64,000 nucleotides of DNA, from assembly GCF_018977255.1 (NCBI RefSeq), contig NW_024704774.1, positions 1,054,001-1,118,000 on the forward strand, in the 5' to 3' direction. Of the stretch, positions 1,154 through 51,664 are shown piece after piece; positions within the stretch are counted from its first letter, which is position 1; every line of letters starts with the position of its first letter. The notes below the pieces were generated by a model that saw only the letters and a list, made by a program, of their open reading frames with translations, ran no database searches and had not been told where the DNA came from. This DNA is from Callorhinchus milii (taxonomy: Eukaryota). The translations under genes were made by a program, and so were the position numbers.

Positions 1154-1192
1154 CACAGTGATAGACTGCACTGCAAGTCTCGTACAAAAACT
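1154..1192 (+). other. 23-RSS of V1
   Basis: CACAGTG + 23 nt + ACAAAAACT. Confidence 0.95.
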
Positions 1193-2604: not shown

Positions 2605-2722
2605 ACGCGACTGAGATGTCAATGAGGTGACGTGAGACTGTGGCTCCGCCAATGCCGACAATCAATGCGGGTTATCAGCAAACTGACGGCACAGACACAA
2701 CCACACAGACTGAGGAGCAGCA
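2605..2722 (+). promoter_or_regulatory. TCR V promoter, copy 2
   Basis: TGACGTGA 2628-2635, 95 nt before the ATG; near-identical to copies 1 and 3. Confidence 0.7.
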
Positions 2723-3641: not shown

Positions 3642-3680
3642 CACAGTGATAGACTGCACTGCAAGTCTCGTACAAAAACT
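3642..3680 (+). other. 23-RSS of V2
   Basis: CACAGTG + 23 nt + ACAAAAACT; identical to the V1 RSS including the spacer. Confidence 0.95.
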
Positions 3681-4464
3681 GCCTTCACTTTGTACATCTG
3701 TCTGTTGAAGTGTGTGCGGAAAATTGGTCAGGCTTTGAGGCCCTGCGGGGAGCAGACATGTCTGTAGCCAGTGTCAGAGGAAACCACATTCACCTCACAT
3801 CAATTTGTTAGCTAAAGGTCCGCATACTATCTGTCACGATTAACGCAGACAACAATTAGTGAACGAGTTCGGCATTACAGGTCCAGTTTCTATTGAATTG
3901 CTTCAGCTTGCAAGTATAATAAAAATATTTTTTTTATTACATTACTTCCGTTTTAGTGAAACCTTTACATGTATTTAGAAAAGTTGATCACTCAATCCAC
4001 GAGCGTTTGTGGGACACTGCTCTGCTCAGTTGGCTGTCACCTCTCGTTCCCGAAATACAGAGTCAAATCACTTTACAGTTTATTCTGTTAATTGCGCTGG
4101 GGTCGTCTCTAAGGCGTGATGAGGCGCAATATCAAATGCAAGAATTATTATTAATCAATATGTGGGAGGCGGGGCTTCAGTATCTCTGGTGTCAGTGACT
4201 GACAAGGCGGGGCGTTACTGTACCCTGTGCTTCAGGTGTTAAAAGCCACTGGAAAAACAACACATTCATGTTTCATTCATTGCATACATTCAAATTTGGC
4301 AACCAACATTAAGACAGAGCTGAACTCTGTCAGCTGACCAATAGAATCTAGTATTTTTCAAGGTGTGATTTTGAAATGTACATATGGAAATCCCAGAGAC
4401 AAAATTTTGAAATGGATCGCACACACATACTGGAGGACATTAGGCGCAGGTCGGACAGAGACAA

Positions 4465-4732
4465 GGTCAGGGCGAAACCTTGGGCAAGTTTCCTTATTCC
4501 ACACGCCTAATAATAATCCCTCCAAAACCAAAAGCGATAATAAATTGGTCATTTGCAATCTACGAATGTCTGTGGGACATTGCTGTGCGCAATTGGCTGC
4601 CGCGTTCGACCACAAATATACAGTCAATTCACTTTACGGTATATTCTGTGAAGCGCTTCGGGACGTCCTCGCGACGTGTTAAGCGCTATATCAAATGCAA
4701 GGATTATTATTATTATTATCATTATTATTATT
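4465..4732 (+). mobile_element. DeuSINE-like SINE, 5'-degenerate
   Basis: Body GGGACATTGCTGTGCGCAATTGGCTGCCGCGTT, L2-like tail and (TTA)n end shared with full-length copies. Confidence 0.85.
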
Positions 4733-4956
4733 AAGGTTTAGGGCCCTCACAGAATGTGTTTGTGTATCTGCTGGAGCTTAAATAGCTAATATCAAACAGC
4801 TTGCCATTCACATTGCTATCTAGTTTTTTTCAGCAGTCAGCGTCCTTCCCGCCAGAGCTTTGGATCGTAGAATTATCAGTTGCTGAGTGGGAGGATTCCC
4901 AATCCCCAGTGACTGGTGAAAGCCGCTGTATAAAAGCAATTGGTTGTTGTTTTGAA

Positions 4957-5074
4957 ACGCGGCTGAGATGCCAATGAGGTGACGTGAGACTGTGGCTCCG
5001 CCAATGCCGACAATCACTGCGGGTTATCAGCAAACTGATGGCACAGACACAACCACACAGACTGAGGAGCAGCA
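4957..5074 (+). promoter_or_regulatory. TCR V promoter, copy 3
   Basis: CCAAT 4971-4975, TGACGTGA 4980-4987 (95 nt before the ATG). Confidence 0.7.
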
Positions 5075-5963
5075 ATGAGGCTGTTTGCTGTCTGTCTTGT
5101 GTTGGGAACCTTTATTTCAGGTGAGATCGTGTTGAGCTGATTCAGTGTTGCTGCAGATTGTCAGCTCTATACCAACAACAGTTAATGAAGTCCTGTATCT
5201 TGTGGATAGAGCATTGGCCTCACAAGTGAGAGGTTCGATTTGCAGACAGGAAAAACTTTGGGCACGTATCCTTACTTCACAAGATCGCGTCTTTTTGCCC
5301 AGTATTCAGCAAGAACCCGTTCGCCATTTAACCACTGTTGAACACGTCGGTAGTCATCCGATTAACCATAATATTTTCATTCAATGGACGACTGTTTGTG
5401 AGACACCGCAGTGTGGAATTGACCGCCGCGTTTGGACCTCGAGTATACACAGCAATTAACTTGAGACAATTAATTGTCATCGACATGACCATGGTTGATA
5501 TAAAATATTTGGATGATTATTATTTAATTGCTGTCAAAACGTATAGCGACTTTCGCGTTGGCAGGATAATGTCCCAATTTGGTGTAAAATAATTATATCC
5601 AAAAGAGAATAAGAGATTATCGCGTTCTTCTTTGTTTATTACAGATCTCTACGATGGGGACTCTGTCAGTCAGAAGGATGGCCCGATACTGAAGAAAGAA
5701 GGAGAAACTGTGACATTTGAATGTAGCTATTCCACGACTGAGAGCTATTACTACCTCTTCTGGTACCGACATTACCCAGGAAAACAGACAGAGTTTATAC
5801 TAAATAGGGATACATATATTAATCAGGAAAGAAAAGGAGAAGGAATTGGAAATCGATTCTATTCTCGGCTTCCCACTTCCCAATCTGTCACCAGATTATT
5901 CATCTCTAACCTGCTGATGTCTGACAGCGCTGTGTATCTCTGTGCTTTCGCACCCTATAGCCC
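5075..5963 (+). CDS. TCR alpha/delta V gene segment 3 (leader 5075-5120, V exon 5645-5963), intact
   Basis: Leader MRLFAVCLVLGTFIS + G|GTGAG; acceptor AG 5643-5644; DLYDGDSVSQK...FEC...FWYR...DSAVYLCAF. Confidence 0.92.
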
Positions 5964-6002
5964 CACAGTGATGGGAACCAGCCACAGCCTCGTACAAAAA
6001 CT
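5964..6002 (+). other. 23-RSS of V3
   Basis: CACAGTG + 23 nt + ACAAAAACT. Confidence 0.95.
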
Positions 6003-10437: not shown

Positions 10438-10488
<51 letters not shown>

Positions 10489-28560: not shown

Positions 28561-28579
28561 AGCCGGGTTTGGTCAGCCC

Positions 28580-31268: not shown

Positions 31269-31448
31269 CTGTTTGATGGGGATGTTGCGATCAGACGGTG
31301 CAGAGCTCAGGAGATTCCCTTTGATTCCCAATGGGAAGTTGTCTGTACTTCTCGGTGTCATTCTCACAGTCAATATCATCATAATCATAACCACACTGAC
31401 TGGTGTCAACAGGAAACAGCGGGTCACTGTCTGTGTGGTGTCCACCCT
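31269..31448 (-). CDS. SRCR gene last coding exon (stop 31293-31291)
   Basis: [52 protein letters not shown]; acceptor CTGCAG; donor GTGAGT 22 nt after the stop. Confidence 0.8.
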
Positions 31449-34400
31449 CTGCAGAGAGAGACATCATTTATTAGTGATTACATTCAGAAAGGTGTCACTG
31501 TGTGTCTGTAAGTGTGCGTCTGCGTCTGCATTTGTGTGTCTGTATATATGTGAGTCTGTGTGTCTATGTGTGTTGTCTGTGTGTTTGCCTGTGTGTGCCT
31601 ATCTGTCTGTGAGTGTCTGTGTGTTGTGTGTCACGGTGTGTGTCTGTTTGTGTGCGCCTGTGTCTGTCTATGATCGTGTATGTGCTGCGTTTGTGTCTGT
31701 GTGTACACAGGTATGTTGTGTATGTCTGTGAGTCTCTGCGTGTGTACCTATGTGTTTGTGCGTGAGGCAAAAATACCGATTGCGGAGATAACCATCTTGG
31801 ATTTCTGATTGTGTGTCTTACCTCCATCACTACAATCAGAATTTTAAAAAAACTGGAAGGGTTGGGCATTCAAGATGGAATTCCTCCTCACTTGTTAAAT
31901 TTTAAATAGATTATAAATTTTTTAAACGCGCGTTTCAATAATTGCTGATAGTGCTGTAAACGATTGTTCCCTTCATTGCATTTAGGTTGTTATTAACAAG
32001 ACGTCGAAACAAGGAAATCTGCGTTAATCGGTAAGTCACAGCACAATTTTATATGTGCAGTTATTGACACAGCACAGAGCACCATTATGTATGTGCAGTT
32101 ATTGACACTGCACAGAGCACCATTCTGTATGTGCAGTTAATGGCGTTACAGAGCGCCTCGGAGATGAATTCATCAAACCCTGAAATATCCATTTCAGATT
32201 GCACATCGACCACTAATTATTCTGATTTTAGATATCACAACAAGGCCAAATATCTCCAGCCGCCCTATTACCAATCCCTTGCTGCAAACACGTACCAACT
32301 CGCCTACACATACAGTCACTACACATTGAAGCCTGTCCGAGACGTCCTAACTTGAAAGGCACTGCACAATTGTAATTCTTGTTGTCCTTATGCCATTACA
32401 TTTCTGTATGGAATGGAAGATTGATTATAATTGCGATAGTGATAATGATTTTCCCTCCCAGATGTGTTGCTGATTAAATATCTCCCGCATTAAGCTAAGA
32501 CATCACAGTTCGGCTCTTACCCTGACAGAGCGAGGCTTCCTGGACAGTGTGACTGGTCAGTGCGGGGACATCAGGGTGTGTGTCAGTGACCAGGAGGAGG
32601 CCCCGGTCCGCCATCTGGAAGGTTCCGCCCTCAGCGTCGTCGTAATCTTCCTGAAGATGATCTGTTAACAGGGAGTCAGTCTTACGCACTCAAACATTCA
32701 GATAGGAAAAGGAGGCAGATATCATAATATTATACAGCACAGAAGGAGGCCATTCAGTCCATCTATTGAAAGAGCGACCAAAATTACTCCAACTCTTCCG
32801 CGCTCTCCCCACAGCCCTGCAAATTTGTCTTCCCCAAATATCTCTCCATATCCACCCAAATTTGGACACAGTGGTGCTCAATGTATCTTATGCCTGAACG
32901 ACTGAAAAAGTCCTGAATTTCTTTTTAGATACTTTATCTGAAGATTAAAGCTTGTGTTACTGTGAAAACCGGATAAATTGGGAGCTCTTTCGCCTCTGGG
33001 TCGGAAGGTTCTGATTGTAATCCACTCGGGGACTAAGATCACACTCTGGATAACACTCCACGGCAGTGCAGTGCATTGAGCTCCGTTTGGATGTTTAGCT
33101 GGAATTTAAATATTGCAAATCTCAAAAGGGAAATAGTTCTTATACTGGAGGGTTGCCCCACATTCCTCCTGATTACTGTGCATATTTTGCGCACAAATTG
33201 CCTTTCCAGTTCATCAAGAGATATACAATCACTAAAAATCACTGGAAACATATGTGAAGTGCTTTGAAACGTCTCGTCGAATTGATCAGAGGCTGTATCA
33301 CATACAATAATTGTTTCACTCACTCACCATTCGGAAGAAACACCTCAGCGTTTCCTTGTTCTGCATCAGATCCATTCACACTCTCCCCAGTGTAGTACTC
33401 CAGTTTACTGATAGAATCGTTGGATCCTGAAACTGTGCAAATAATGTCATTACTGTCCCATTACAGAGGTTCTTAGAGCCTAATTCTACTCCAATATCAA
33501 AACGAAGAAAGGTATCAACAATGAGAGATTTTTTCCGAAATCGTGGATCATTTTCCAAGGATGAAAATATGGTCAACCGCTCAAAAACATGATGTTGATC
33601 AAGAGAAAATCTTTAACATACCAGGAGCAAGTTGGTTAAATAATATTAATATAATTTTTGAATACTGCCTCTGTTTAGGCTACGAATGACACATTTGAAA
33701 ACATGGTATTATTTTAGATATTCGCTGCGACTACAGACACACTATAACCATCGCTTATATTAATTTCTGTAGGATTCGTTTTGGTGAATTGATCAAGCCC
33801 AATATCTAAAAGTTATTTTACTGTATACTAAATTAACTAATGTAACTTAGCTTAATCGGTGAATGCAGAAATCATCGTTGATAATATTTGAAAATTGAAA
33901 GACCGAACAAATTGAAGTATTGAGTAGGTTTCACCTCTTTTAAGTGGGTAAATTGATACAACGCAACTGGATGTGGATTTTTCAGTTCTCTGAATAAAAG
34001 CTTGAAATCCTAACCACAGCGCATTCAATCATTTGCATTTGCCACCAATCGGGATACTAATGTTGATGCTTTTTGTTCAATGATGCGGATGCAATAAATA
34101 TGATTGTAAAGTATGTACCAGTGGAGTCAGCCTCGAAGTTTCTTCTTCTGATCGGCCGATCCTCAATTTCTTCATAAATTGCTTGATACAAACGAGCAGA
34201 TGGATATTTTTCCTCTGTTGGAAGTTGACATGTACAGAAGTTAAAATATTAACCTGAAATTGCACAGTGGAGTTTGAAATTGATATGTAAATATTTGGAA
34301 CATGTTACGTTAGTATTATTATTTGAAAATGTCAATATATCATCGTCACTATTGCCTCATTATTCATCAGTGTACTTGTTTTTGTCAGTGTTTGTTTCAA

Positions 34401-37400
34401 TCGGTAAATATGACTGTGCATTTGTATTTAGGTACCTGCAAATATCTACTTAGCTCTGTGTGTTGGTGTGTTAATACAACTGTGTATTTGTGATGCTTTG
34501 TGGGTATCTACGTTTTTGTTTGAGTTTAACTTATTTAATAATAATCCCTCCAAAACCAAAAACAATAATAAATTGGTCATTTTCAATCCACTACTGTTTG
34601 TGGGACATTGCTGTGCGCAATTGGCTGCCACGTTCGCCCACAAATATACAGTCAATTCACTTTATTTTTTTGTAGTCCTTTATCGAAAAATATGTTATTG
34701 CGCTCCGTTTACGTTGAGGCCTAATTGTGTCTGGTGGTTTCTTTATGCATCTGTGGTTGTGTTTGAGCTACGCATTTGAACGCATATGACTTTAATTTTA
34801 GTTTGTGCAACTTTACAGATACATGTGAACACAGGCAATGAAATCGAGACGGTAAAAACAGGTAAGAGTATTAAATTAACAAAAACAGACACGTGCGTCA
34901 ACAGGATTTTATCTGAATTGATAGAGAAGCTCCAGCCATTGCTGTGAGATCAGATTCCAGTCTCACCTGTTCCTGAAGAATTACTGTCCATCTGTACAAT
35001 CAGTGCAAACAGTACCACCGCTAACAGGATTCCAAGGACGATGCAGACCACGAAAGGTATGTTGATCAACTGGACTTTGCAAGTCAAGGACATAACATTT
35101 GTTATTTTATTGTTGTACAACATGTGGTAGTCACACTTTCGAAACTATAAAGAAAAATGCTTCACACTAAACTGAACGTTATCTGAAGCAAATTATTGCA
35201 CAGTGATATGATATGTTCCACAGTGTATTCAGAATAATGCCCAAACTATCTGAAAAATTGTCCTGATGCAGCTCTTTTCCTGAAGTTAAACGCCTGTTAA
35301 TTTCTAAAATGTAGTTATACAGTCTGTTCATTTCTCAAGTGTTGACTACTGAAAGGTTAGTTGACAAATATACTGGTTTGGATATATTAATGTTTTTACG
35401 AATGAATGGCAATACCTAGTGGTAATATGTAGGAAAGCTAAGCAATGCATTAGCAAAAAGTCAAGTCATTATGTTATTTACCGAAGGATGCGGTTGGGAC
35501 TGGCGGTCTTGGAGGTTTACCTGCAAAACATCGCAAACAACATAAATCCAGTAACCATTCAATTTCTGGCATCAAATGAAGTCAGAATTAATCTGCTTTT
35601 GTTGAGAAAAATTTAAAAAACCTCAAATTTGTCGATGAACATTGAGAGATCGGATCCCTACCGGAGCAAACCACACCGGCGTCTTCTTTGTGAACGCAGT
35701 CGCTGCGACCCGCGGATGCGGAGACGCAATCCCACAGAAAGGATTCGCTTCCTCTGCAGTGAAGCTCGTCCAGCCATATCTGACCAGCGCCTTGTCCGAA
35801 CCCCGCCTGTCCCACAGCCCGCACGGCCGGGCCGCAGTCCAGCTGTCCGCACACCACACTGGCCTCTCGGATATCCCAGGAGTCGTCACACACCGTCCCC
35901 CACGTCTTATTGCTCAGTATCTCAACTCTCCCCGAGCAAATGCTGCTTCCTCCAACCAACCGCATCTTCTGTCCTGATCACACAATATTCATATCATATC
36001 TGTTAATTATTCACACAATAAACTATGCACTGTTGCATCATAGTATCAAAAACTGTTAACTTGTGAAGCATTATTCATAGGATAAATATAATCGTCCTAT
36101 AAATAATCTTTCAAATAATATTAACGATGAAAATTTGCTCACTCAATCTGCTCATGGACATTATTGCGCGCAATTGACTGCCCAATTTTGCCCACACATA
36201 TACAGTCGTTTTACTTTCCTGTATATTCTGTGAAATGGATAGTCATGTCCTGAAGACCTGAACCGCGCATTATCAAATTGAACCATTATTATTATTAGTC
36301 GTATTATGCAGTCCATGCGCGTTGCAGAAGATACTATGAAGCCCCTTTAGACATCCTACTGTAATGAATGATTTGATATCAAATGCAAGTGCCTTTCATT
36401 CAATTATTTTTCATTCAATACCTGATAAATGATGCTGCTCGTCAGGTGACCTCCCAGGGCACTGTTTTGCACGAGCCGTTTTTCTCGTAAATTTCTCTGC
36501 ATTAAACACAGATTTACAAATGAAGTGGTTCCCATTGAAGCACAATAAACATTCGCTCCGAAATTTTAACTGAGGAACATTTCTTTACCTTCACAAACTA
36601 CGCGCACATCGTCCGAATGTTCACAGTCGTGTTCACCCCAAGGTGTCGAAGAACACTGCCATAGGAAGGATTCCTGTGAATTACACTCTACGTCATCCAT
36701 CCAAATAGGTCCAGATGCTTTATCAATTTGGCCATCAATATCAACCTTCAGAGCGTGGCCACAACCTAACTGTTTGCAGATCACCTCAGCGTCTTCGAGT
36801 CCCATGGAGTCGGAGCAAACTGTGCCCCAGGTCCCATTGTAAAACACTTCCACTCTCCCCTCACAGGAATGTTGTCCATTCACCAGCCGCAGTGACTTGT
36901 GAGCTGCGAAGGAATAGTGCTGTTGTTTGACACACGTTTTCGATTTATTTGATCTTAAGTGCTCCCCACCGAGTCAGATTCCGTAACCTGCTCCAAGCAA
37001 TAACGTTAAATAAATGCAAGTCTGTCTCGTTCTTGATGTTTTAATTTCATGTGGAGGAGCTCACGTGAAGTACATTGGATAAATCTATTATTAATGCTCG
37101 AAAACACCGAGGTGTAATTTATAACAATATAGTTGACGTTTCATATAAGAGTAACATATGTTACCCCTTGTGTTTGATTATGAAAAATTACATTGACACA
37201 TCTGAAATACTCCTCAGTCATTACACATTTCAGAGGTTTTACTAACTATTTGACGGAATATCCAGCCAGATTCAGAGGTCAGTGTCCCAGAACCAGCTTA
37301 AATTGAATGATCCTGTTTGATCTGGAGATGAGTTGGACAGTGCACCAGGAGAAACAGTATCACATCAACAGGTACTGATAGCCTTGTCAGCTTTTCCTCC

Positions 37401-40400
37401 TGCACTGAATTGTTTTCCTTTACATTGATTACCCCATTTGAGTGTTGACCCCCAAACCTTCCATATCAACCTTGCTGGTGCTGATAACAGAGCCAGGCTG
37501 ACACTCAATCAGCAGATAGTAATGGTGTTACACAAGGTGTTAAACTCACTTACCTGTACAAACAATGCTCACATCTTCTTTATGACCACAGTCATGCTGC
37601 CCCCATGGAGACGAGGCACATTCCCATAGAGCCGATTCATTTCCTGAACATCTCATCTCATCCAACCAAACTGGTCCTGAGGTTCGCCCACAAAGAGCAT
37701 CAGCTGCTTCATCAAATACTGGTCCACATCCGAGCTGTTTGCACACAACATCCGCCTCAAGTGATCCCCAGGAGTCATCACACACCGTACCCCATGTTCC
37801 GTTGTAGTAAATCTCCACTCTCCCAGCGCAAGAACTCCCACCGTCCATCAGTCTGATCTGAACATCTTCTGCTAAACGTAAGCAAAGTTTAATTGAAGGT
37901 AGAACTGATGAGATGGGAGCACGGAGTTTGGTCTGTGGTAAGTAAACGGGCAGCAGAATTCTGATTGAGCTTAATTTTTGAACAGTGTATCTCGGGATTA
38001 AGTCAAGCAGAGCGTTTGTCTCATCCAGTCCGGTGGTGAGAAAGGCAAGTAGGAGGATTTCGACTACATTTGGGGTAATATGTTGTAGGAGGCGTGCAAC
38101 ATAGCTGAAGTGAAGGAAGTGGAACTGGTCAGGGATGAATGTGAGTGAGGAAGCTTATTCTGGGATCGAAGTGGATGCATAGATTGCAAACCTCTTCGGT
38201 GTGTCTGAGGGAGACCCCGGCGAGGCTGAGGAGTTCAGATCCACTGGAGTGAAGACATTACCGGGAGCCGAAGAAAATGGCTTCTGTCATATCAACAAAA
38301 AGCTGCAAGAAGCTTGCACACATGAGGTCTTCCACAAAAGCTTATAGGACATGGACGAGCCTCGATTCGCTGCTCGAGAAGGCAAAGGAGGAAAAGGAGA
38401 CAAGGCCATTGATGGAGCCCTGGGGTAGCTCGAAGTTGAGCGGGTTTGGTTGGAAGAAGAAACAATTTAATACTAGAAATTTTATTCTCGTGCTGCTGTT
38501 AACACTTTTGGCAAACGTTCACTCACTTGAACTTTGCACTCCAGCATCAACTGTGCTCCCGTTTGATTGATTTATCCGAAGCTGTTTGTTATCTGTTCCA
38601 TAATAGAAAAACAAAAGTCAGTTTTCTGGTTGGGAAAAACGTTTGCGTTTTAAAATTATCAGCATCCGTTAAACAGAATTGTGTGTCGATATATTGAGTG
38701 TGGGTGAACCTTCATTATACATTGACTGTCATTCTCCTGTCAGAGCTCATTCGCAGAACCAAAGGTGGAATAATTCAATGATAGCGGACGTTTTTGCATC
38801 GAAGAAGGAACACCAACAAGAAGCCCTATTATCAGATATTTTATAATGCGGTGTTAAATTGACAATGATTCATTCCATATGTTAGTAAAATGCACTCACC
38901 CGAACAAAGCACTCCCACATCACTGCTGCTCCCGGAGGATGAAGCCACTGTGGAATGTGCGCAGTTCCAGATGTGCGTCTCGGTTCCCGCACACTGAACA
39001 TTATTGATCCACACAGGTCCAGTGCCTTCCCCGTACTGGGAAGAGTTGTAGACTGAAATAGCAGAGCCACAGTTCAGCTGTCGGCAGATGACATCGGCAT
39101 CTGATATATTCCAGGAATCGTCCAGCAATCTGCCCCAAGTGCCGTTATGATAAATCTCCACTCGCCCATCACAGCGGCTCACACCGCTCTCTAACCGTAA
39201 GTGCCACTGTGTACCTGCAACGGTTTCAATCAAAAATTTCTCCATGAAAACGTGTGAGAGCTGAAGTGTAGATAATCGCAGCTACTCGTTGCTAAACCGT
39301 GGCAACACACCTGACACCACCACACAGAAAACTGCAGTAACATGCAAATAACGAGAAACTTTCACAGACCTACACATAAACAACAGACAACAACAGACAC
39401 AATGACATCAGCCTCCAACCCAATAACTCAACAAACATCAACCTAATGTGGTAGGAGTAAAGAAACTTCAGCAACAGGTGAATATTTGAAACAATTGTGC
39501 CCAAAAAGCATTACCGTCACACATTAAACCAAAGGTTTTTCCTCATCAGAATCAGTTAATCAGGTTACAGTGTGGGAATGAGGGGTAACTGCTGTATCTC
39601 AGGAGTCGATGCTGCTCCGTTCTCGATTGCAATAATATAATTAATGTACTTTTACCGAATTAATGCCTTAATAGGCCGCTTTATCACGTGCAATGTTTAT
39701 TGTAATTTCACTCACCCGAACATGCAACAGTAACGTCATGAACATGTGTGCAGCTGTACTCCTCCCAGAATGACCAAGGACAGTCCCACAGCAAGGACTC
39801 GTTACCAACACAATTAAAGTTAGTTTTCCAGATACGACCTGTTTCTTTCCCAATCTGTGCTCCAGGACCAGTTGATAAAGCATATCCACAATCCAGTTGC
39901 TTGCAGAGAACACCGGCGTCCTTTAAATCCCAGTAATAATCGCAGATGGTTCCTGATTTATAATCGCGCTGCAGCTTAACTGTGCCAGAACAGTTGTTGT
40001 TTCCGCCGATTAACTTCAGGGAATGATATTCTGTAGTGGAATGATTAACGTAATATGAATTATAATTTTTAAAATAATATTAATGATACAAACAAATAGC
40101 TTAGCGATGTGTGATTATCAGGCAGCAAAGACTTGAAAGCTGAAGCAATGATCAAATACATAGAGTCAGAAATCTACATGTAGTTTCGTGTCCAGTGTCT
40201 AATGCACTCTACAAAATATGAATTTACCTCCAAGTGTTTTACCCATTCTCTAAACAATACAATATTTGACTATTCAGCACCCTGCAAGTTAGTAGCTGAC
40301 TACAAAGCCTTTCATAGTACCTGCTATCAAAGGAAGGTCTGGGAGGGTGCGAAGCGAAATGATGACCGAAAGCAGAGACGATAAACACAGTTTATAGTTA

Positions 40401-43400
40401 GTCTGTGATTTACAGCAATTTGATACTTTGACCCCAAATGTTCAGAAGGAATACCTCTGTGATAAGCACTATTACACTCGGTGTCCCTCCTACGGCTGTG
40501 AGTGACGCACAATACAGAAGATGTTTTTCTCTGCAATGTCAAAAGCTCTCTATGAAAGATTAATACTGTCAGTGACTGATAGTAAAATGCGATCAATTAT
40601 TTTTCAGCACGAGTTGTTTGGTTCCCAAATACAGCTAACAGTCAAACATATCCAGCAAAGTATGTTTTTAAATACTGTATCCGTGTTGAGACAACATGTT
40701 TTGACACTGTGTTGAAGGCTGTACCTGAGCAGAATATGCCACCGTCTCGATCATGTCCGCAGTCAGGCCAACCAACAACAGGTCCCGATCCTTCTCCAAA
40801 GCGAGCATCACTTGATACTGATAAAGCAAATCCGCATCCCAAATATTTACAGATATATCCGGCCATCTCCATGTTCAGGTCATTTCCACAAACTGACCCC
40901 CAAGTGTCCTGGGTGTACAGCTCTACTCTCCCCGAACAGCGGCTGCTTCCATTCACCAGTCGGGGACTTTTAGTTCCTGCCAATAAAACAAAAACAAATC
41001 ATCAGGGATACATTCTAAGTTATATGCAATTAAAATGCAACGACAACATGGATTAATATGGCGCCCCAAAGGCAGCTTTGGGTCCCAGAGGACTTATCAA
41101 TACCATATCATCATAATCTACGGGAACCATTGGGTTTTTCTAGGATATCAGCAGTTGTGCATGAAGTGTTGGATACCGGAGACGTGGATTTGGTGCTCAG
41201 AAGGCATCAGATCACGACAAGTATTACATCCAATTATATGTCTGATGAAAATAGTTCATGATACATCTGTTTGTGGGGTTGTGGCCAGAAGAACACTTTC
41301 TGCCGAAGTAAATAATTTGGAGCTTGTGAAGCGTTCAGCTGGGAAAGACTTTTTGGAAGCAACTGGAGACGTCAAGTCTGTGTATGAGGAAACGCATTAA
41401 GCTTTCGGCTTCTTTGGAAATATCTGGAGAAGACGATATTTACGAGAAAGGAAAAGAGAAAAGAGGCGGAAGTCTGTATGTTATGTTGAAAAAGCTGGAT
41501 TTGTGGATCCAAAGACAAAGTGATGAACAGATTCTCGGGGGAACCAAAAAGGATGGCTTCGATATTGTCAAATTAAATTAAGGAAATTAATGCTCGTCAA
41601 GACTGATGGTATCGGCTGTCGGTTATCGCAGCAGAGGTCGAGTGATAGAGACTTCACTTCAAGGATGATTTATGATAAATGGCCTTTCTCTTTGAAATGA
41701 CGTCTGAAAGCTCTTCTTGGGATCTATTAGCAATTCAAAATTCTGTATTTGGTTGGGGAGTGAACAGCATTTTTGTCCAAGATTCAGAACCTGTCACTAA
41801 GAAGGTTCTTTGTGTAAGGTGTGGTGTCCTGTAGCTCAGTGGTTAGAGCACTCGCTTTGCAAGCGAGAGACCTGAGTTCAATTCCAGGCAGAGGGCGAAA
41901 CCTCGGGCAAGTTTCCTTACTCCACACAGAGCCTAATAATAATCCCTCCAAAACCCAAAACAATAATAAATTGGTCATTTTCAATCCATGACTGTTTGTG
42001 GGACATCGCTGTGCGCCATTGGCTGCCGCGTTCGCCCACAAATATACAGTTAATTCACTTTACAGTGTGTTCTGTGAAGCGCTTTGGGACGTCCTCCCGA
42101 CGTGAAAAGCGCTATATCAAATGCAAGGATTATTATTATTATTATTATTAAGGAGGTGATGGGGCAATCAGCAGCGCAGCAAGTGAGCTAGAGGGGCAGG
42201 ACGGAAAGCCGTTTGAGTTGAAATAATAAACACTCCTGCACGCAGGCTTCATACCGCAGTTAGAAGATTATATTTTTACCACTTGCAAACTTAATTCCAG
42301 ATTATAACCATCGTCATTTTTGACATTGAGCCATTTATGACAGGTGGACGCCTCGAAGCTCTTCACAGGATCTACTGTCACATTTGATTACTACGTATTA
42401 TCTGAGACATTTTGGTCGGGAAAGGGAAAATGTGTTAAAAAAAAAACAACTTGCAATCATGTAACATGTCTTGGACCGTTTAATAGTGGTTGACCCCGAG
42501 CCGGGGGTGGGGTGCCGGGCGAGGTGCTGGCCAGGCGATTGAGGGATTCTCTAGGATTAATTACTAATTATTATCTTAAGGACGCATATATTTAAAATAA
42601 ATATATTTTACTTCCGTGCTGAAAAATTATTTCATTGAAGGATTGAAGCCACAGTTGTGCAGAAACACGGAGGTTAAAGAAAATCAACATTGAACGACGG
42701 AGGAGGGCTGGAGGGTGGGCGGTAGCGGGGTTGAGGGTGGGGGGTGGTGAGGAGCGGAAGGAGGCGGTGTGACCCCCCAAAAAACTAGGGATTTAAAACT
42801 GACAAACTGACATCATGTGGAATGCAATCTCTATCAGAGTTTCTCAAACTGTGGTTTACCGAAAATATGAGGATTGAAAAAATTGATGGGAGACTGAATT
42901 ATTTACCTGAGCAGATGACGCCGGAATCATAGGTGTGTGACCAGTAATAGTGACCCCAGGACCCTGACTGACAATCCCTCAGAGTAGACTCACTTCCTCT
43001 GCACCGAACATACGCGGTCACAACGGGACCTGAGCCTTCGCCAAAGTGAGCGTCTCCTGATGCTGACAGCGCGGCCCCACAGCCCAACTCCTTACACACC
43101 ACAGCCGCGTCCAACATATCCCAACCACTGTCACCAGAGCCAAAGCCATCCACTGTGCCCCATTGTCCATCGTGGTAGACCTCCACTCTCCCGGCACACG
43201 GGCTGCCGCCATTCACCAGCCTCAAATGATCTGCAAAAACATCACCAACAATATGCCTTTGTAATTGATTTCCAGTCGCGCAGGATAGTCATAATTATAA
43301 TAATAATATTTGTACATAATCGGAAGCGCTCTGAGTCGCCGTCCGGGGTTGAGGGCGCTATATCAATCCGAGTTGTTTTTGTTGCAGCTGTTGCATTTGC

Positions 43401-46400
43401 CTACACAGTCATTGCTCCTTACAGTAAATTCTGTGTAGCGCTGGAAGAGTTGTGCAGGTTGTGTCAGGGCAGTGTATGTAATCGATGGTGGGACTTGAAC
43501 GATGGTTTTCAGTAAATGATAGAGTTAAAGTTGCTGCACATTCCACGTGTCCTCATAGTTCAGGTGACATTGATAGGCTCAGCGGGATGTGGAACAATAA
43601 TAATTGACACAAGACGAAAGTTAAATGTGGACTGGAATCGAGGTGTGGATATTTGGAGGGGAGAACAGGGTGGAGAGGCGTGTAAATCAAGAGACGATTT
43701 GAAGCACAGACCGAGGTTACTAAAGTTGTATTACTTAGGTTTGTTTAAATAGGGGATTACATAAGGTGGAGAAAGAGGGATCGGGGAGCAAATGCTTTAG
43801 CTTCCATTTACAGGAAAACATCAGTCAATACGTATTAAAGTTGCAACGGTTAGATGGAAGACACGAATCGCCTTGAGTGTTCCTGCAAAGATGAGGTTAA
43901 AATTCAAACAAACAGAGGAAATGTTCCTCTCAATTCAGTACTGTAAAGGAGAGAAAAAATAACAAGGACAAACTCAACGTGAGATGTATTGAAACTGCGG
44001 GATAGATCTTCACAGCAAAAACAATAACTTCTTATCTTCTTGTACATGTGCCTGTCACCCGGGGAAGGGAAGGGTCTCTGGGTTCTTAACAGGGCAGAGC
44101 TTGTCCAGAAACACTGCAGCACTCTTCCTCAATCCCTCCTCCTTGACTCCAAGTTTATATAACATAGGAAGAGCTTCCACTTCGACCTCCCTGTTTCTCT
44201 GGGTCGGGGTCCTGCTGACCCAGGCGCTCTGAGATGCTAACCTGCAAGAGGGACGGTATGCCAATGCAAGATGTTGTCAATGAGGCCGAAGGATAGGTGG
44301 GACTGCTAGAGGATGAGGGGTACAAGTAAGATGGTTAGGGTATGACGTGAATGGCATGTGAGTGTCAGGATTATAAACAATATCCGTTTTGCTAATGGAA
44401 GCCAATGGAGCCTGACATCCATAAAAGCTGCAGCAAGTTGCATCTGCAGTATATTTCGCACCATTTATGTCGGGAGGATGGCCCTAGTCTTGGGTTTGGT
44501 GGTGCTACAAAGTTTTGATTTAATTGTATTTTATGAATTTTGTGCTGAAGACAAATAGCTTATCCAAAAAAAAACACTCACCTAATTTCTTAGCTTGACT
44601 GTCGACTTGAGGACCTGAAATGAGAAAGTTTTCGCCAGTTACATACTTTAGAAGTTTAGTTTGAATGATGAACCCTTTTGAACTATTCAATCTCATTCCC
44701 CATCAGATTAGTTTTGACAGACAGAGAGTAACCCACTTGTAAAGCTCAGTCCGTTCTACTTCCACTGCACAACGTTGCGCTCACGGTCAAATTGAACGCT
44801 CAACTAAGTTGATAAATGATCAGTGAAATCAGATCAAAGCCTTCTCTCTCAGAGGGCGATACCGCCTGACCGAGCCTCACACAATATACAGTGTGACTAA
44901 ATAGTCGCCATACAATTACAAGTCTTATAAGTCTGAGGGAAATGGTGATAATATATATTATATATGTATATATATTGAATCTAATTATATGAGTACTGCT
45001 ACTCATAATAATCCTTTCGTTGGATATTGCGCATAATCCCAACATTCAGACGTCTCAAAGCGGTTCACGGAATATAATGTACAGTTTAGTGACTCTGTCA
45101 TTTGGGGATGAAAGACGGAAGGAAATGCACTGAACAGTGCCCCGCAACAGCTCTGCACAAAAACTGAGCGACCAAATTATTATATTTGTCAGGAGATTTG
45201 GCGTCTCCGACAATACGCGGCTCTCTCTCCGTCACCATCGCCCCAACTCCAGCGCTGTGCTGTATCGTTATCCGGGTCTGTGAGCTCAGGTTCTCCGAGG
45301 TCTGTGGGTGTGCGGTTGTGTGGGTGTGTGTTGGGGGGGGGGGGAGGATGTCTAACCCGCAACCTCCTGACTCGGAGGCGAGAGAGAGAGCAAAGGTCGG
45401 AAACGCAACCGAAGCCGAAAATTAAGCACTCTGTAGCTGGAAACTATTTAACTATAAATGTGTCAGTCATTTTCCATCCACTTAAATAATTTATTCATCG
45501 CATTGTGAAAAGGTGTGAAGGATTGCAACTGGCGAGGAGAGCTGCTTAATGTGAGACTAAACATCAGATATTCCCATCTCCCGTTGAACTGACTTTGCCA
45601 TCTTAACGATAAAGCCTGTTTTTAACATCCACCATCAAGTGTCACCTCACTGAGACGCCTCAGAGCGCTTCACAGAATATAATGTGGTTGAAACTCTGCA
45701 GCAGTTGTGCAGAGCCGTATCCGACAAACCGTCGTGAATTAATCATTATATTAATGATATGGTGTCCAATGCAATGCGGCGATCCTCATTCCCCCACATA
45801 TACCACCACCTCCAACACAACCAACACCACCACCACCACTCATGGCTGAGCTTGTGAGTCAGTCAGGACTGTGAGATCAGGGACCCCGACGTGCGTGTGT
45901 GCGGTTGTGCGGTTGTGTGAATATGTGTCTTTTGGGGGTGGAGGGAGGGTCAAACCTACAAACTACTGACTCGGAAGCGAGAGAGCGAGCAAGAGATGGA
46001 CAGCCGGACACGCAATCTATACTGAAAAAAAAGACATCTACAGCTCGATTCTTTTTAATTACTAAGGTGTCACTCATTTTAGATCAGTTTTATTAATTTA
46101 TTAGTCACATTGATATCAGTGTATCTCAGTGGTTAGAGCACTCGCTTTGCAAGTGAGAGACCTGAGTTCAATTCCAGGCAGAGGGCGAAACCTTGGGCAA
46201 GTTTCCTTATTCCACACAGAGCCTAATAATAATCCCTCCAAAACCAAAAACAATAATAACGCGTTCGCCCACAAATATACAGTCAATTCACTTTACAGTG
46301 TGTTCTGTGAAGCGCTTTGGGACGTCCTCCCGACGTGAAAAGCGCTATATCAAATGCAAGGATTATTATTATTATTTATATCACGTATTACGTCATCGAG

Positions 46401-48044
46401 ACGTCCCAAAGCGAACGGCAGAATACAGTGACAAGTGCAACGACTGTGTCTTTTGTGGGTGAAACGCAGCATCAATTGTGCGCAGCAATATCCCAAAAAC
46501 AGTCGTGTATTAAGTGACCAAATTATTATTGATGTAAGATGACTTGGTGTCTAGTACAATGCACTTCCCCAAATCCAGCCCCCACCACCCCCACCACCAC
46601 CCCCATCGTTGGTCTGGAGTGTTAGCCTGGAATATGAGGGGTGTGGGGGGTGGCAGATGGGGTGTGGTGGGGAGAGAGGGGGTGGGGAGGTGGAGGTGGG
46701 GCTCCAAGATAATAGGGGCGAGAGCGAGATAGAGAGCAAGAGAGAGACTCAGAAGGAGACGCAACCCACAAAGAAAGATAAATATTCTAAAACTGGAAGC
46801 TTTCCAATTATTGATGTGTTGGTCATTTTAGATCAGTTTTATTCATTTACTGTTTACAAGTATTATTCTGGAAATGCGTTGAGTTGCAGAATACCTTCTC
46901 GTTAACACGTTAGTAAACTAAAGATTCCCAAATGCTACACATTAGATGTTGAGTATTATTGCAGAGGTATTGAGACACATGACTGCATGCAACTCTGTTA
47001 ATGATACACAGCAACAACATCACATTTGTAAAGTTTCTTTCACATCGGGAGGACCTCAAAGATTGGGCCCCGAGCTGGAGGTTGGGATCAGGGTGATGGA
47101 GGGCAGGGAGGGGAGAGGGAGCTGCCTGGAGGAATGCGCGGTTGAAGAGGAGGGAGTTGAGACGTGTTTTGATGGAGGCAAAGGAGGGAGAGAGATGAAG
47201 TGACTGTGGGATCTCCAGGCGCTGTGGGCCAAGGAGCTCAAAGCCGATGGTGGGGTAGGCCGGGCGGGGGGTGTTGAGAAGGCCAGAGCCTCCTGAGGGT
47301 AGGGAGCGGACCAGATAATAACTGTCCTTGGGCATTTCTGTACTTTCATCAGTATCATTAAGCTGAATTGTTCATTACTAATGCACCGAATCTATAACTG
47401 AGAGCAATACCGCTTACAATCTCAATCATATAAAAAATACTTTTAAAATACACAATGTTCATGAATATCTGAAGCCTTGAGAAGCCATTGCCGAGCCTAT
47501 AGTTATTGGTGTTCACATGCATTAAAAGTCGCACTGACAAAGATGTGAAAGATTGTAACTTGCCAACACCTGCGTAACATTAGATGAAACAGCAGATGTT
47601 CATACTTTCCTTTACACTGACTTCACAATCTCAATGATAAATTATGTTCTTAACATCCACCTTCAGATTCCTCAAGTCAGAAAATCATGTATTTAAGAAT
47701 ATGACCTCAATTCAAACTAAATGTTTCTAAATAATGACGGTTTTTTTGAAGAACATTTATATCTAAATTAATGAGGATGTCCCCTCGTTTGCCATGGAAA
47801 AGTGATTGACGCACTCTGTTCAAAGATCTTGAAATGAATAAAAAACATACTTTGATTTGCTGCCGTCGGATGGTTTAGGGCCTTCTTACACTATATGATG
47901 ATTAATCTGCAAATTACCTTTACATTTGACGTGAATGTATTTGGATACCATCACAGCACACATATTGTTTAAGCACTTGACTATCTGCAATAAATTCACT
48001 GACAAATTCATCTGAAACAATCCTCACATTTTAATTCAATACAA

Positions 48045-48082
<38 letters not shown>

Positions 48083-50013
48083 AAACAATGTAATGCTAAT
48101 TTATTTTACAGGTAGGACAGTAATATTTTATTGATAATATGTGTAAAACATGAATAGATCGCCAATATAATCCATGCGTTTGTTCTGTTATTTCCTATAT
48201 TTTCATTAATCTACAGAATGAACAATAATTTGACAATGTTACAGCGGATTTCACAGTGAGATAACGTCTCAAACCGCCTGACACAGCGGTAATGGAGCGG
48301 GAGCTGAGGAAGGAGGAGAGAAAGACCACCAGAGTCAGGTGGAAAAGGAACATTTAAGGCGGGTTAAAAAGAGCCAATGTGGAGGGGGAGAGGCTGCGGG
48401 AGGGGATGGCAGACAGCGGGACCTGAACAGCTGAACACTGGTGAGCAGGTGGTGGGGAATTGAGCTGCCGAGGGAGCAGTCAGGCCGTGGGGCTGTGGCT
48501 GATGTTCAGTGGAATGAGGCCACGCAGGGACTTAAACTCCAGGAAGAAAAATACATTCAATCTTGTTCTGGCTCCAAATCCACCAGCAGATCCAATTGAG
48601 CATCTTTTATCCTGGAGAAGTTTGCTCTATACAGCTATTCCCAACACAAGCTCCAGACGACCCGGAACCCTGTGGGGCCTGTCCTCTCCAAATAGCCATG
48701 AGAGGCAATGCTGACAGACTGCCATGGCTGGTGCTGGAGAGGACAAGAGCTGCAGGATCTGGCTGGGCTGCAGCTTGTGTAGGGAAGAGCTGTGCAGTCA
48801 GGCTTAGAGAGCATTGGTCAAATAATAATAATAATGATAATAATAATATGATTACTCAATCCAAGTCTGTGTTGGACACGGATTTGCACAATTAGATGCT
48901 GCAGTTTCTCTTTAAAGTCAATTTACTTGACGCTGCATCATGTGAAACTCTCTGAGTTGTCTTGAAGACATGATCAGTCACGACAACAACTGCAAGAATT
49001 ATTGTTATTTAACTCACCCGAACAGACAACTGTATTATTATTATTATCATTATTATAACCAATACTGGACGTGAAGAAATATTGTTTAGTACATTTGCAA
49101 CAAGGGGGCAGGTAGAGTGTTGAATATGCTTCTCCTGCATGTGTTCACTTATTATTTATATTTATTTTCCTTTTTACTCCTCGTCATGTTTGTGTTCAAT
49201 ATAAACATCAAAGCCGCTGAGGGTCAGAGCCGTGAAGCCATTCCCCGACACTGTCCTGTAAACCTGCGGTATTGTATCTCAGCTGCAGTTACAGTGAGGA
49301 CAGAGACTATGGCTCTGGCTATGGTTCTGTGGATGATGGTCCCTATGTTACTGATTTAATGTATGTTTTTCTCAGGGACCTGCCCTCGGCTGTCGCTAAG
49401 TTAATGCTCTCAGTCTGTGATGATCCAATCCTCCAGATCGATTACCGTCAATAGCAGCGGCGCAGGACGGGAAGCTTCAGCCGGTGTTTACAACACGGGG
49501 ACTGGGAGCTGTACATAAACCCCATGTGTATTGGTTTCTTATAGAATAGAAAGATTGTAAAATCTTTAGATTAACAAGTAGAAGAAAAATAAAATAAATG
49601 ATTTGAAAATGCCTAAATTTGTAAATATCTTTGAAACAATCAGCATTTTCTTATCTCCGCTTCTAAATCATGCAGAAAAAAATCTGCTTTATGTACCGCT
49701 ATCAAGAGCAATGAGCAAATAAATACTTAAGTATCATGCACTGGAATGGAACATTTACTGACATGTTTAACTCAATGGTTCTTCATTTCTTTATGTAAAT
49801 CAATTTACTTTTACAAGTTGCTTATTTGCCGCTGTTTTCAAAAACTTTAACTTTATTGTGATACAATCAGTATTATTTTGATAAAATTTTAAATTGAAGA
49901 TATATCATATCCACGTATTTCTCAGTCTCTTTGTCTCACTAAACAAGTGTCTTCACATTGCTCAGAGCAGCGCTGGTGCTGAACAGGAGAAACTGCCCCA
50001 GAAACAGCTTCAT
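31291..50013 (-). CDS. CD163/WC1/SCART-family group B SRCR type I membrane receptor; 7 SRCR domains, about 974 aa (16-exon model)
   Basis: Exons 50013-49957, 47890-47851, 44614-44582, 43230-42907, 40976-40725, 40030-39716, 39214-38900, 37868-37554, 36903-36589, 35973-35662, 35520-35482, 35074-34967, 34214-34119, 33432-33328, 32661-32521, 31448-31291 sum to 2925 nt, stay open and have GT-AG boundaries; the first two exons are tentative. Confidence 0.85.
32521..32661 (-). CDS. SRCR gene cytoplasmic exon 3
   Basis: [21 protein letters not shown]...; AG/GTAAG, 141 nt, phase 1-1. Confidence 0.85.
33328..33432 (-). CDS. SRCR gene cytoplasmic exon 2
   Basis: [35 protein letters not shown]; AG/GTGAGT, 105 nt, phase 1-1. 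Confidence 0.82.
34119..34214 (-). CDS. SRCR gene cytoplasmic exon 1
   Basis: [32 protein letters not shown]; 96 nt, phase 1-1. Confidence 0.85.
34967..35074 (-). CDS. SRCR gene transmembrane exon
   Basis: [36 protein letters not shown]; CD163/WC1-like CIxLGxLL pattern; donor GTGAGA; AAG acceptor less certain. Confidence 0.85.
35482..35520 (-). CDS. SRCR gene Pro-rich stalk mini-exon
   Basis: TTTTGCAG|[13 protein letters not shown]|GTAAAT; 39 nt, phase 1-1. Confidence 0.8.
35662..35973 (-). CDS. SRCR domain 7 exon
   Basis: [15 protein letters not shown]...[10 protein letters not shown]; 8 Cys; 312 nt. Confidence 0.95.
36589..36903 (-). CDS. SRCR domain 6 exon
   Basis: [26 protein letters not shown]...DDVRVVCE; 8 Cys; 315 nt. 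Confidence 0.95.
37554..37868 (-). CDS. SRCR domain 5 exon
   Basis: [30 protein letters not shown]...[10 protein letters not shown]; 8 canonical Cys plus one extra; 315 nt. Confidence 0.95.
38900..39214 (-). CDS. SRCR domain 4 exon (lacks C2 and C7)
   Basis: [30 protein letters not shown]...DVGVLCS; 6 Cys; 315 nt. Confidence 0.93.
39716..40030 (-). CDS. SRCR domain 3 exon (missed by the ORF track)
   Basis: Hand translation: [48 protein letters not shown]...[24 protein letters not shown]; open, 8 Cys, 315 nt, AG/GTGAGT. Confidence 0.92.
40725..40976 (-). CDS. SRCR domain 2 exon (internally shortened, 84 codons)
   Basis: [17 protein letters not shown]...[20 protein letters not shown]; C5 and C6 absent; 252 nt, in frame. 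Confidence 0.88.
41330..41720 (+). mobile_element. Decayed LINE endonuclease-region fragment
   Basis: Remnant resembling YRKDR..RGG.V....K in broken frames; family uncertain. Confidence 0.4.
41823..42150 (+). mobile_element. Full-length young tRNA-derived DeuSINE-like SINE
   Basis: tRNA-Ala-like head (stem CTCGC, loop TTTGCAA), boxes A and B, Deu-like core, L2-like tail, long (TTA)n. Confidence 0.93.
42907..43230 (-). CDS. SRCR domain 1 exon, WC1 a1-like (lacks C2 and C7)
   Basis: [45 protein letters not shown]...[15 protein letters not shown]; 324 nt, phase 1-1. Confidence 0.95.
44582..44614 (-). CDS. SRCR gene N-terminal mini-exon
   Basis: CTTTCTCATTTCAG|[10 protein letters not shown]|GTGAGT; 33 nt, phase 1-1. 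Confidence 0.7.
   Translation of the reverse strand, partial: VLKSTVKLRN
45180..46860 (+). repeat. Three diverged tandem copies of a several-hundred-bp unit (GT-rich, G-run, GACTCGGAxGCGAGAGAG)
   Basis: Shared blocks at about 45290-45420, 45880-46095 and 46640-46850. Confidence 0.55.
46117..46376 (+). mobile_element. SINE with internal deletion of about 70 bp in the central domain
   Basis: AACAATAATAAC joined directly to GCGTTCGCCCAC, relative to the copy at 41823. Confidence 0.9.
47851..47890 (-). CDS. Tentative exon 2 of SRCR gene
   Basis: TAG|[13 protein letters not shown]|GTATGT; 40 nt; only the phase 0-to-1 reading is open, which bridges the phase-0 leader to the phase-1 mini-exon. 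Confidence 0.4.
48047..48076. repeat. (AT)15 microsatellite
   Basis: Directly visible. Confidence 0.95.
49957..50013 (-). CDS. Tentative signal-peptide exon of SRCR gene
   Basis: [19 protein letters not shown]|GTGAAG; hydrophobic core and small-residue cleavage region; weak donor. Confidence 0.5.
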
Positions 50014-51664
50014 TGCAACAAGACCGAGTCCCTCAGTGTCAGGTGTTCACTGTCAATTGTAGTTATTGGACAACAACAGTCAATCCTTTTCTTTTGAGTC
50101 AATAAAGAAAGTAAAATACTGAACTCAAAATAGGAATAGATTCAGCCATTCAGTCTCTGCGCTCGGGAACTCCTTCCCCCAGTCCCCACGACTCGCTGCC
50201 TCTTTCCCCCTCAACTCTCTGCCTCTTTCCCCTCTGATTAAAAGCAACAGAACCCTATGCGGAAAGGCAATATTTGTGTTGAAACCTTCCTTCACATGCG
50301 AGTAATATGCATGTAACTTTCAATCAAAAAAGCTTAATTTTTTCATAATCCATTCAACTATTTAACTTTAAATCAAGAGCTGCTGTGGCCTCCACCAACA
50401 GCAGGGAATTCAACTCAATACATGTTAGTTATTGCTGATAAACTGCTCATATCTGAAGTGTAAAGTAAAACAAACCAACAACCAAGCCAGAATAATATTT
50501 AATGCATTATCTAAAACCATCAAAAATGTTATAAAATTCACACGACACATAATCTGCTTAGAATTACAACACTGACCATTGCTGACCATTCACATTGCTC
50601 CAGGACTCACAGGCAATTGCTTCCAATGCGTTGAATTCAATATTTAAAACAGTTTTCACTATATGAGAAATGGTTTATGTATTTGCACAGCAATCCATTT
50701 TTCAGACAAAATTTTTTTTATTCCTGAGTGATTGGGAAAATGATCATCCAAATATTTCCCATATTTTGATCAAAAATACAACTTTCTTTTGCCCTTTTCC
50801 CTTTTTTTCACTTTAAAATTTACTAACACCATGAAACGCCATATACCAAATTGCAATTCAGTAAATATAATTTGATTCTATTACATGATCAGTGTGTAAA
50901 GTGGTCAGGACTAACAGAGATTAATCACCATCCTTAATTTTTAAGAATAGCACGCAGTATGATTATGTTGAAGATATATCAGAAACCATTAACTTACATG
51001 TCAGAATATGGAGAAGAATGTAGATGACCAGTGACCGCAGCATCACAACTGGACAGTGTGACATTGAATTGAGGGACATAAAGCGAGTGCTGTCAACCAC
51101 TGCCGTCTTGACCCTCCAGCACCGGACAACAGCTCACCACAGACCAATGTCTCTGTCCATATAACCAATAGATTGTTGATAGGTATAAAATGAAGCATTC
51201 GCCTGACAAGATTCACCAATGAGCGGTGATATTACCGTATATGGATATAATTGCTCGTCTTTTCTCTTTGATCGTGCTTCCTGAGAGACCAATGGCGGAA
51301 ATGTGGCTCATGAGTTGAGATGGGCCATCAAACATTTGTGCATTGTATGTGTCCATCAGGATTACAGATACTGGAGTATGTGAGGGTGTGGGGTGTGGAT
51401 CAATGTGTGTTCAGGGACCTCCAAATCTCTCTTGTGTTTGATGGGAGATGGACGCACAATTTGATCCACACACTTTGCAATCTATACATTTCCATCATGT
51501 TACATTGCATTGCATGTAATAACACGCACCAATGTTATAGCGCCTGATCATTTAATTGAGACGTCTCAAAGCGCTTCACAGAATACACGACCAAGTGAAT
51601 TGACTGAATATTTTGGGGGCAAAAAGTAGCAGTCAATGGCGGTAAAATGAGGAATATGGAAAGC

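Follow-up and report, generated by a model that had tools for sequence, protein, structure and literature searches.

To our knowledge, descriptions of the SCART/WC1 branch of the CD163 family of scavenger receptors have so far been limited to mammals, chicken and platypus. The cytoplasmic tails of WC1 and CD163c-alpha (SCART) all share the motif Y-(Q/E)-(D/C/E)-(I/L), the tyrosine of which is required for WC1 signalling, and the tails of CD163A and M160 are unrelated to them (PMC2906472). Here we describe a gene from the elephant shark, Callorhinchus milii, whose sequence supports a place in this branch and not with DMBT1 or SSC5D. It lies at 31.3-51.0 kb on the minus strand of a 64,000-nucleotide stretch of DNA (the window; contig NW_024704774.1, positions 1,054,001 to 1,118,000, here numbered from its first letter) and adjoins a cluster of T-cell receptor (TCR) variable (V) segments with a new antigen receptor (NAR)-type cassette. 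With moderate confidence, we read the locus as an intact SCART/WC1-branch gene in a lineage-specific position beside TCR V segments.

Seven open reading frames (ORFs) with scavenger receptor cysteine-rich (SRCR) signatures are found in the gene region, and the Pfam SRCR profile PF00530 matches all seven (E-values 7e-15 to 1e-33). In the final model, 13 coding exons form one frame of 932 codons, free of stops and frameshifts. All introns are phase 1 and GT-AG, with 24 of the 24 splice sites canonical. Each SRCR domain is encoded by a single phase-1/1 exon between an AG acceptor and a GT donor. The seven Pfam matches, an exon for a transmembrane (TM) helix and the uninterrupted 932 codons bear out the open, multi-exon, seven-SRCR membrane receptor proposed in the preliminary description. 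They confirm a real, intact gene, predicted to encode a type I membrane protein with a signal peptide, seven group-B SRCR domains (d1 to d7), a single TM helix and a cytoplasmic tail. No SRCR exons were found elsewhere in the window, which contains no N run. One further "SRCR-like" ORF, at 26517-26720, was discarded as a chance match without tblastn support.

Exon 1 (50998..51043, on the minus strand like all exons of the gene) contains the start codon and the signal peptide MLRSLVIYILLHILT, a leader homologous to the elasmobranch leader MLRSFLT..LLNCR. It was located by tblastn with the leader of the Heterodontus protein P0220 and ends in the phase-1 donor ACAT/GTAAGT. The start had originally been placed at 50013, which is wrong: the ATG there is followed only by phase-0 or phase-2 GT donors, which do not fit the phase-1 d1 exon, and is unlike the shark leaders. 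The homologous start at 51043 is thus preferred. The minus-strand ORF at 50013-49957 resembles a signal peptide, and its donors do not match the phase of the following exon. Chance may account for it; otherwise it may serve as an alternative first exon, joined through an intermediate one.

The seven domains follow in exons 2 to 8. Domain d1 is encoded by exon 2 (42907..43230; Pfam E-value 3e-27, supported by splice sites), and the short d2 by exon 3 (40725..40976), which matches Pfam profile positions 1-62 only. Exons 4 (39716..40030; 1e-23) and 5 (38900..39214; 2e-28) encode d3 and d4, the latter resembling the "n"-type domain of SCART1. Domain d5 is found in exon 6 (37554..37871; 2e-33), and its top solved-structure match is human CD163. 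Domains d6 and d7 occupy exon 7 (36589..36903; 1e-33) and exon 8 (35662..35973; 2e-31, with the acceptor read). The domains have eight cysteines (nine in d5), or six where a pair was lost, as in d1, d2 and d4.

The TM helix is encoded by exon 9 (34967..35074), with a mean hydropathy of 3.45 over 20 residues, and aligns with the TM helix of the shark proteins. Four cytoplasmic exons follow. Exon 10 (34119..34214) carries a Y-E-E-I motif, identified by the published tyrosine rule and by tail alignment. Exon 11 (33328..33426) carries the block KLEYYTGES, common to camel WC1, degu WC1-like and Xenopus proteins, and was placed by tblastn with Heterodontus P0178, splice sites and phase. Exon 12 (32521..32661), found by tblastn with P0220 and ending in the phase-1 donor CAGG/GTAAGA, carries EDYDDAE, a block common to WC1 and SCART1. 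Exon 13 (31291..31448) was recognised by its open frame and the acceptor TGCAG/AG; its GYDYDDID block is common to WC1, SCART1 and echidna proteins. The stop lies at 31291-31293, exactly where it had first been reported. Searches with the shark homologues thus revealed the leader exon and two tail exons (33426-33328 and 32661-32521), and these two tail exons were missing from the preliminary exon set. An earlier model in which exon 10 was spliced straight to the last exon was accordingly dropped. The complete tail has 171 residues, including nine tyrosines, 38 acidic and 11 basic residues.

Automatic annotation has given the homologues contradictory names ("DMBT1-like", "M130-like", "antigen WC1.1-like" and "SSC5D"), so the family was judged by domain and tail tests. 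A single-domain protein search, ranked by summed score with many-domain proteins first, served as a source of sequences only. For the domain test, we inferred a phylogeny of 87 SRCR domains with IQ-TREE (LG+G4; 1000 ultrafast bootstraps and the Shimodaira-Hasegawa-like approximate likelihood ratio test, SH-aLRT; support given in that order). The clade of d7 (97/84) contained the last domain, and no other, of CD163A, M160, WC1 and SCART1 and of the Xenopus, tarpon and shark proteins, and d6 clustered with the penultimate domains of CD163-family proteins (99/98). The two are thus orthologues of the membrane-proximal and penultimate domains of this family. Domain d4 formed a clade with SCART1 d5 and with d4 of Xenopus, tarpon and shark (91/91), in which no domain of WC1, CD163A, M160 or DMBT1 was found. 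The six-cysteine pattern of d4 is also that of SCART1 d5, as judged from a single SCART1 reference. Domain d3 fell within the b/c-type clade (97/97). The DMBT1 domains (turtle, loach) and the lamprey domains formed separate clades. A domain-wise phylogeny had been named as a check, and no window domain fell inside a DMBT1 clade.

The cytoplasmic tail was compared in a MAFFT alignment of 21 tails. Four blocks of the elephant shark tail (YEEI, LEYYTG, DYDDAE and YDYDDI) are common to sheep and camel WC1, degu WC1-like and Tasmanian devil SCART1, and likewise occur in echidna, caecilian, Xenopus, tarpon and shark proteins. Exon 10 contributes AIYEEIED, whose counterparts in the alignment are AVYEELDY of sheep WC1, ALYQEIDD of camel and GIYEDLAI of SCART1. 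Marmot CD163A (YQEM) and rhino M160 (FHEM) align at the first block only, the other three being absent. A search with the tail of Mustelus P0230 alone returned elasmobranch proteins only and no Callorhinchus copy. We also searched the window by tblastn with the turtle and loach DMBT1 ends and found no CUB or ZP exons (best E-value 0.1, on the wrong strand). By sequence, the gene is very probably a CD163 family member. Because of the domain tree, the tail motifs and the absence of CUB/ZP exons, a placement in the SCART/WC1 (CD163c-alpha) branch is supported over one with DMBT1 or SSC5D, and the same three results uphold the WC1/CD163-like identity suggested initially. Since the gene has no duplicated domain cassette, it is not WC1 proper.

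The short d2 and the cysteine losses provide a further comparison across species. In d1 and d4, the disulfide partners C2 and C7 are both gone, as they are in shark d1 and d4, SCART1 d5 and sheep WC1 d1. In d2, 21 residues of the C5-C6 loop are missing, including C5 and C6. The same deletion is present at the identical site in Heterodontus P0220 and P0178, Heptranchias P0198 and Pristiophorus P0171, while other shark and ray paralogues have a full-length d2. A deletion shared with sharks indicates that the orthogroup predates the split between chimaeras and elasmobranchs, and therefore that the short d2 is not a sign of decay. An AlphaFold2 model of the short d2 from a five-sequence alignment (mean predicted local distance difference test score 55.8) was too poor for the fold to be read. 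Through its collinear domains and four-block tyrosine tail, the gene extends the SCART/WC1 branch to the deepest split among cartilaginous fishes. This implies that a signalling tail of the gamma-delta co-receptor type was already present in the jawed-vertebrate ancestor.

The V segments and the NAR-type cassette lie 13-30 kb past the 3' end of the SRCR gene, all on the plus strand. Three conventional V segments (864..6002) were identified from V-like ORFs and a scan for recombination signal sequences (RSSs). Their exons start at 864, 3352 and 5668 and end at 1154, 3642 and 5964, and each is followed by an RSS with a 23-bp spacer, CACAGTG-23-ACAAAAACT. The NAR-type V (11613-11900, RSS at 11888) has shark IgNAR V as its top solved-structure matches (E-value 5e-15). 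A supporting V (14878-15179) without a leader is preceded by a splice acceptor and followed by a 23-RSS (15180-15218). Two V relics, at 16221-16502 and 18308-18481, were taken from the ORF list and matched V1/V2 by tblastn at 46-48% identity over the C-terminal half. No V-like sequence was found between 18.5 and 64 kb.

The conventional V segments share 55-77% identity with twelve Callorhinchus milii V-set proteins and had no other matches. Attempts to type them as alpha or delta failed: the PDB matches were swamped by single-chain variable fragment constructs, and the top Atlas match was a gamma-V cluster with an unspecific score. Their label as TCR alpha/delta segments rests on the NAR-TCR context and the RSS type.

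The last V relic lies 12.8 kb, and the supporting V 16.1 kb, from the 3' end of the SRCR gene (31291). The physical adjacency of the gene to a V cluster with a NAR-type cassette, as reported in the preliminary description, was therefore recovered. The earlier distance of about 16 kb holds when measured to the supporting V, and that of about 11 kb to the last relic does not. The V segments are oriented toward the SRCR gene. Were the diversity, joining and constant (D-J-C) segments located to the right of the window, rearrangement of the upstream V segments or of the NAR cassette would excise this gene copy from that chromosome. Such removal in cis would speak against the gene being a dedicated partner of the neighbouring NAR cassette.

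Two tandem arrays, at 27695-28237 (52-bp unit, 10.4 copies) and 28577-29265 (20-bp unit, 34 copies), lie in the interval that separates the V cluster from the SRCR gene, within a GC-rich and strongly C-skewed stretch. Copies of a repeat resembling a short interspersed nuclear element (SINE) occur at 4361-4633, 23124-23432, 34449-34661, 41726-42187, 46119-46292, 55761-56051 and 60577-61002. The summed RNA word depth of this repeat reaches hundreds of thousands, with many variant contigs and internal joints.

We next consider the age of the linkage between the two kinds of genes. The described flanks of tetrapod TRA/TRD are METTL3, SALL2, DAD1 and ABHD4, with no mention of SRCR, CD163, DMBT1 or "scavenger" genes (PMC12529555). 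In cattle, the WC1 genes and CD163A are located on chromosome 5 (PMC2906472). In chicken, nine WC1/CD163-like SRCR genes occur together with olfactory-receptor genes on chromosome 16 (PMC4988538), which does not support a location of CD163-like genes among avian TCR alpha/delta V segments. Our literature search on WC1/SCART of sharks, teleosts and amphibians, and on SRCR genes in TCR loci, found nothing relevant beyond the papers cited here.

The genomic neighbourhoods of homologues were also compared. The tarpon homologue adjoins an RPAP3-like gene and the gar homologue another SRCR gene. Three loci of the sevengill shark (Heptranchias), about 200 kb in total, included the short-d2 orthologue P0198, with more than 20 kb of upstream and about 10.6 kb of downstream sequence. 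At these five loci (one tarpon, one gar and three sevengill, with flanks of about 10 kb), no V-like ORF, tblastn match to the window V segments or RSS was found. The P0198 gene model at the Heptranchias perlo locus L004 starts with a repetitive MI(G/S)EMM exon (10001-10483), and the first SRCR exon follows about 21 kb downstream; the repetitive exon is probably an annotation artefact. As the flanks of the homologues do not reach the 12.8 kb that separate gene and V relic in Callorhinchus, the shark loci provide no positive evidence for linkage, yet do not exclude it. Together, the literature and the tarpon, gar and sevengill loci do not support the proposal that the linkage has existed since the gnathostome ancestor. 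The linkage is probably lineage-specific, and not an ancestral association of TCR and co-receptor genes.

Read depth indicates that the gene has close relatives in the genome. In one DNA run, word depth over the SRCR exons was mostly two to six times the intron baseline of about 55. Among the covered exon bins, the lowest depth was about 60, in one SRCR6 bin, and the highest about 320, and several variant contigs were present. The gene thus belongs to a multigene family with close paralogues. Of the 31-mers sampled from the SRCR1 exon, each of six RNA runs contained 7-25%. The RNA contigs on SRCR1 were fragments of 85-137 bases, one with a single mismatch and the others with 2-10, and those on SRCR2 were weak, with about 92% identity. 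A few RNA contigs at 90-93% identity represent paralogues, one of which stops exactly at the exon border at 38900. This RNA probably derives from relatives that share domains 1 and 2, and is no proof that this copy is used.

Several points weigh against our reading of an intact SCART/WC1-branch gene with a lineage-specific position. The placements of d1 (65/77) and d5 (57/92) in the domain tree are weak. The juxtamembrane stretch does not contain the basic stop-transfer residues of the homologues, and the gene model has no linker between d6 and d7. Since the linker, the stalk and the basic juxtamembrane residues are all present in the shark proteins, a small exon may be missing from the model. 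SRCR3 to SRCR7 (exons 4-8) and the introns, apart from the SINE-like repeat, were uncovered in seven RNA runs, which are small and have coded tissue labels. The elasmobranch flanks of about 10 kb fall short of the spacing observed here, leaving room for a linkage across chondrichthyans. Finally, the argument from deletional joining holds only if the D-J-C segments are positioned as supposed.

The missing RNA over exons 4-8, the multicopy family, and the absence of the d6-d7 linker, stalk and basic juxtamembrane residues relative to the shark homologues would also fit a silent or dying duplicate whose frame is still open. Such a copy would have to have kept 932 codons in 13 exons without a stop or frameshift, all 24 canonical splice sites and four of four tail motifs, however, and its structural cysteines are all either kept or lost in pairs. 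The RNA runs are also small, and their tissue labels are coded. We consider a silent duplicate fairly unlikely.

A scavenger receptor of myeloid cells or epithelia, acting as CD163A or DMBT1 do and playing no part in T cells, is an improbable reading of the gene. The shark homologues are named "DMBT1-like" or "M130-like", and single SRCR domains score well against solved structures of both proteins, with CD163 the best match and DMBT1 at about 120 bits. The names, however, are assigned automatically and inconsistently. P0072, P0150, P0178, P0220, P0230 and others are called "DMBT1-like" and yet have a TM helix and a WC1/SCART-type tail, so that the database names of these shark genes are misleading. 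The elephant shark gene itself combines a TM helix with a WC1/SCART-type tail, not one of the CD163A type, and has neither CUB/ZP exons nor a single domain in a DMBT1 clade.

We regard as very unlikely the more far-reaching idea that a gamma-delta co-receptor-type gene has been linked to TCR-delta since the gnathostome ancestor and serves gamma-delta or NAR-TCR cells. The WC1/SCART-type tail and domain order, the nearby NAR-type cassette and a CD163-like gene that marks a T-cell subset in cod, a distant fish precedent (PMC9276791), are all compatible with it. Against it stand the tetrapod TRA/TRD flanks described without an SRCR gene, the positions of cattle WC1 on chromosome 5 and of the chicken SRCR genes on GGA16, the tarpon homologue beside an RPAP3-like gene, and the five homologue loci without V segments or RSSs in their flanks. 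In addition, the gene lies downstream, on the RSS side of the V segments, so that deletional joining would remove it in cis. That the adjacency is an assembly error is scarcely credible: SRCR genes and V segments are both multicopy, and SINEs and two tandem arrays (27.7-29.3 kb) fall in the interval between them, but the window has no N run and four DNA runs yield short-read contigs that tile positions 35.5-41 kb (the junction itself being 18.5-31 kb).

For the intact SCART/WC1-branch gene that we favour, WC1 offers a model of function. WC1 is phosphorylated by Src-family kinases (PMC8356672). By analogy, clustering of the elephant shark receptor with an antigen receptor would allow Src-family kinases to phosphorylate the YEEI-type tyrosine of its tail, and this phosphorylation would add to lymphocyte activation. 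The SRCR domains would bind microbial or self ligands, as suggested by work on cattle WC1. If the analogy with WC1 holds, the gene product would be a hybrid of a pattern-recognition receptor and a co-receptor. A lymphocyte co-receptor role is possible, and we propose it tentatively.

The proximity of TCR V segments, a NAR-TCR cassette and an SRCR gene in the elephant shark genome is unusual, and at present it is a positional curiosity only. A highly speculative extension, to which we give very little weight, is that chimaera SCART/WC1-like genes were amplified together with TCR-delta V segments and NAR-TCR cassettes as functional units, with V(D)J deletion setting which copies are kept in each T-cell clone. 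If so, copies between the chosen V and the J-C segments would be lost, resulting in an innate co-receptor repertoire gated by rearrangement.

Among known receptors, DMBT1 differs in architecture. It also has tandem group-B SRCR domains, but it is secreted and its SRCR array is followed by CUB and ZP domains (P0192, P0236), where the window protein has a TM helix and a tail. CD163A (M130) and M160 (CD163b) share the orthologous last two domains. They differ in having nine or 12 domains, no "n"-type domain, and tails with Y(R/Q)EM or FHEM that lack the YYT and YDD blocks.

The WC1 tail blocks AVYEEL/ALYQEI, LQYYTG, (N/G)YDD(A/V) and (E/C)(Y/-)DDVEL all have counterparts in the window tail, WC1 d1 has six cysteines like the window d1, and the last two domains of WC1 are orthologous. 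Conversely, WC1 has 11 (or six) domains, arranged as a1 followed by a duplicated b-c-d-e-d cassette without an "n"-type domain, whereas the window protein is a single run of seven domains. The two share 32-36% identity.

SCART1/CD163c-alpha, as represented by Tasmanian devil P0098, is likewise a type I protein with group-B SRCR domains. Window d2-d7 are collinear with SCART1 d3-d8, and the whole ectodomain with domains 2-8 of marsupial SCART1. The "n"-type domain corresponds (window d4 to SCART1 d5, 91/91), as do the last two domains (99/98 and 97/84). The Y-x-(D/E)-(I/L) motif, EEYDDIE and the C-terminal GYDDAEL-type block of the SCART1 tail also have counterparts in the window tail. SCART1 differs in having eight domains, beginning with "m" and then "l" at the N-terminus, against seven in the window protein, and its d1 has no counterpart there. 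Window d1 joins SCART1 d2 weakly (65/77). Unlike SCART1, the window protein has a d2 shortened by 21 residues, and the LEYYTG block of its tail is absent from devil SCART1. Overall identity is about 40%.

The closest relatives are the elasmobranch "DMBT1-like" proteins Heterodontus P0220 and P0178, Heptranchias P0198 and Pristiophorus P0171. They have the same seven-domain layout, the MLRS... leader and the DYDDVE tail block of the window protein, and share 47-56% identity with it from end to end. Heterodontus P0220 aligns with residues 1-897 of the model at 47% identity, and Pristiophorus P0171 shows 56% identity over 800 aligned positions. The shark proteins differ in their linker of 25-35 residues before the last domain, their stalk and their basic juxtamembrane residues, which the window gene lacks, and in their last tail block, which is degenerate (NNEDVHCD). 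Beyond the cartilaginous fishes, the seven-domain proteins of tarpon and Xenopus are also collinear, domain by domain, with the window protein.

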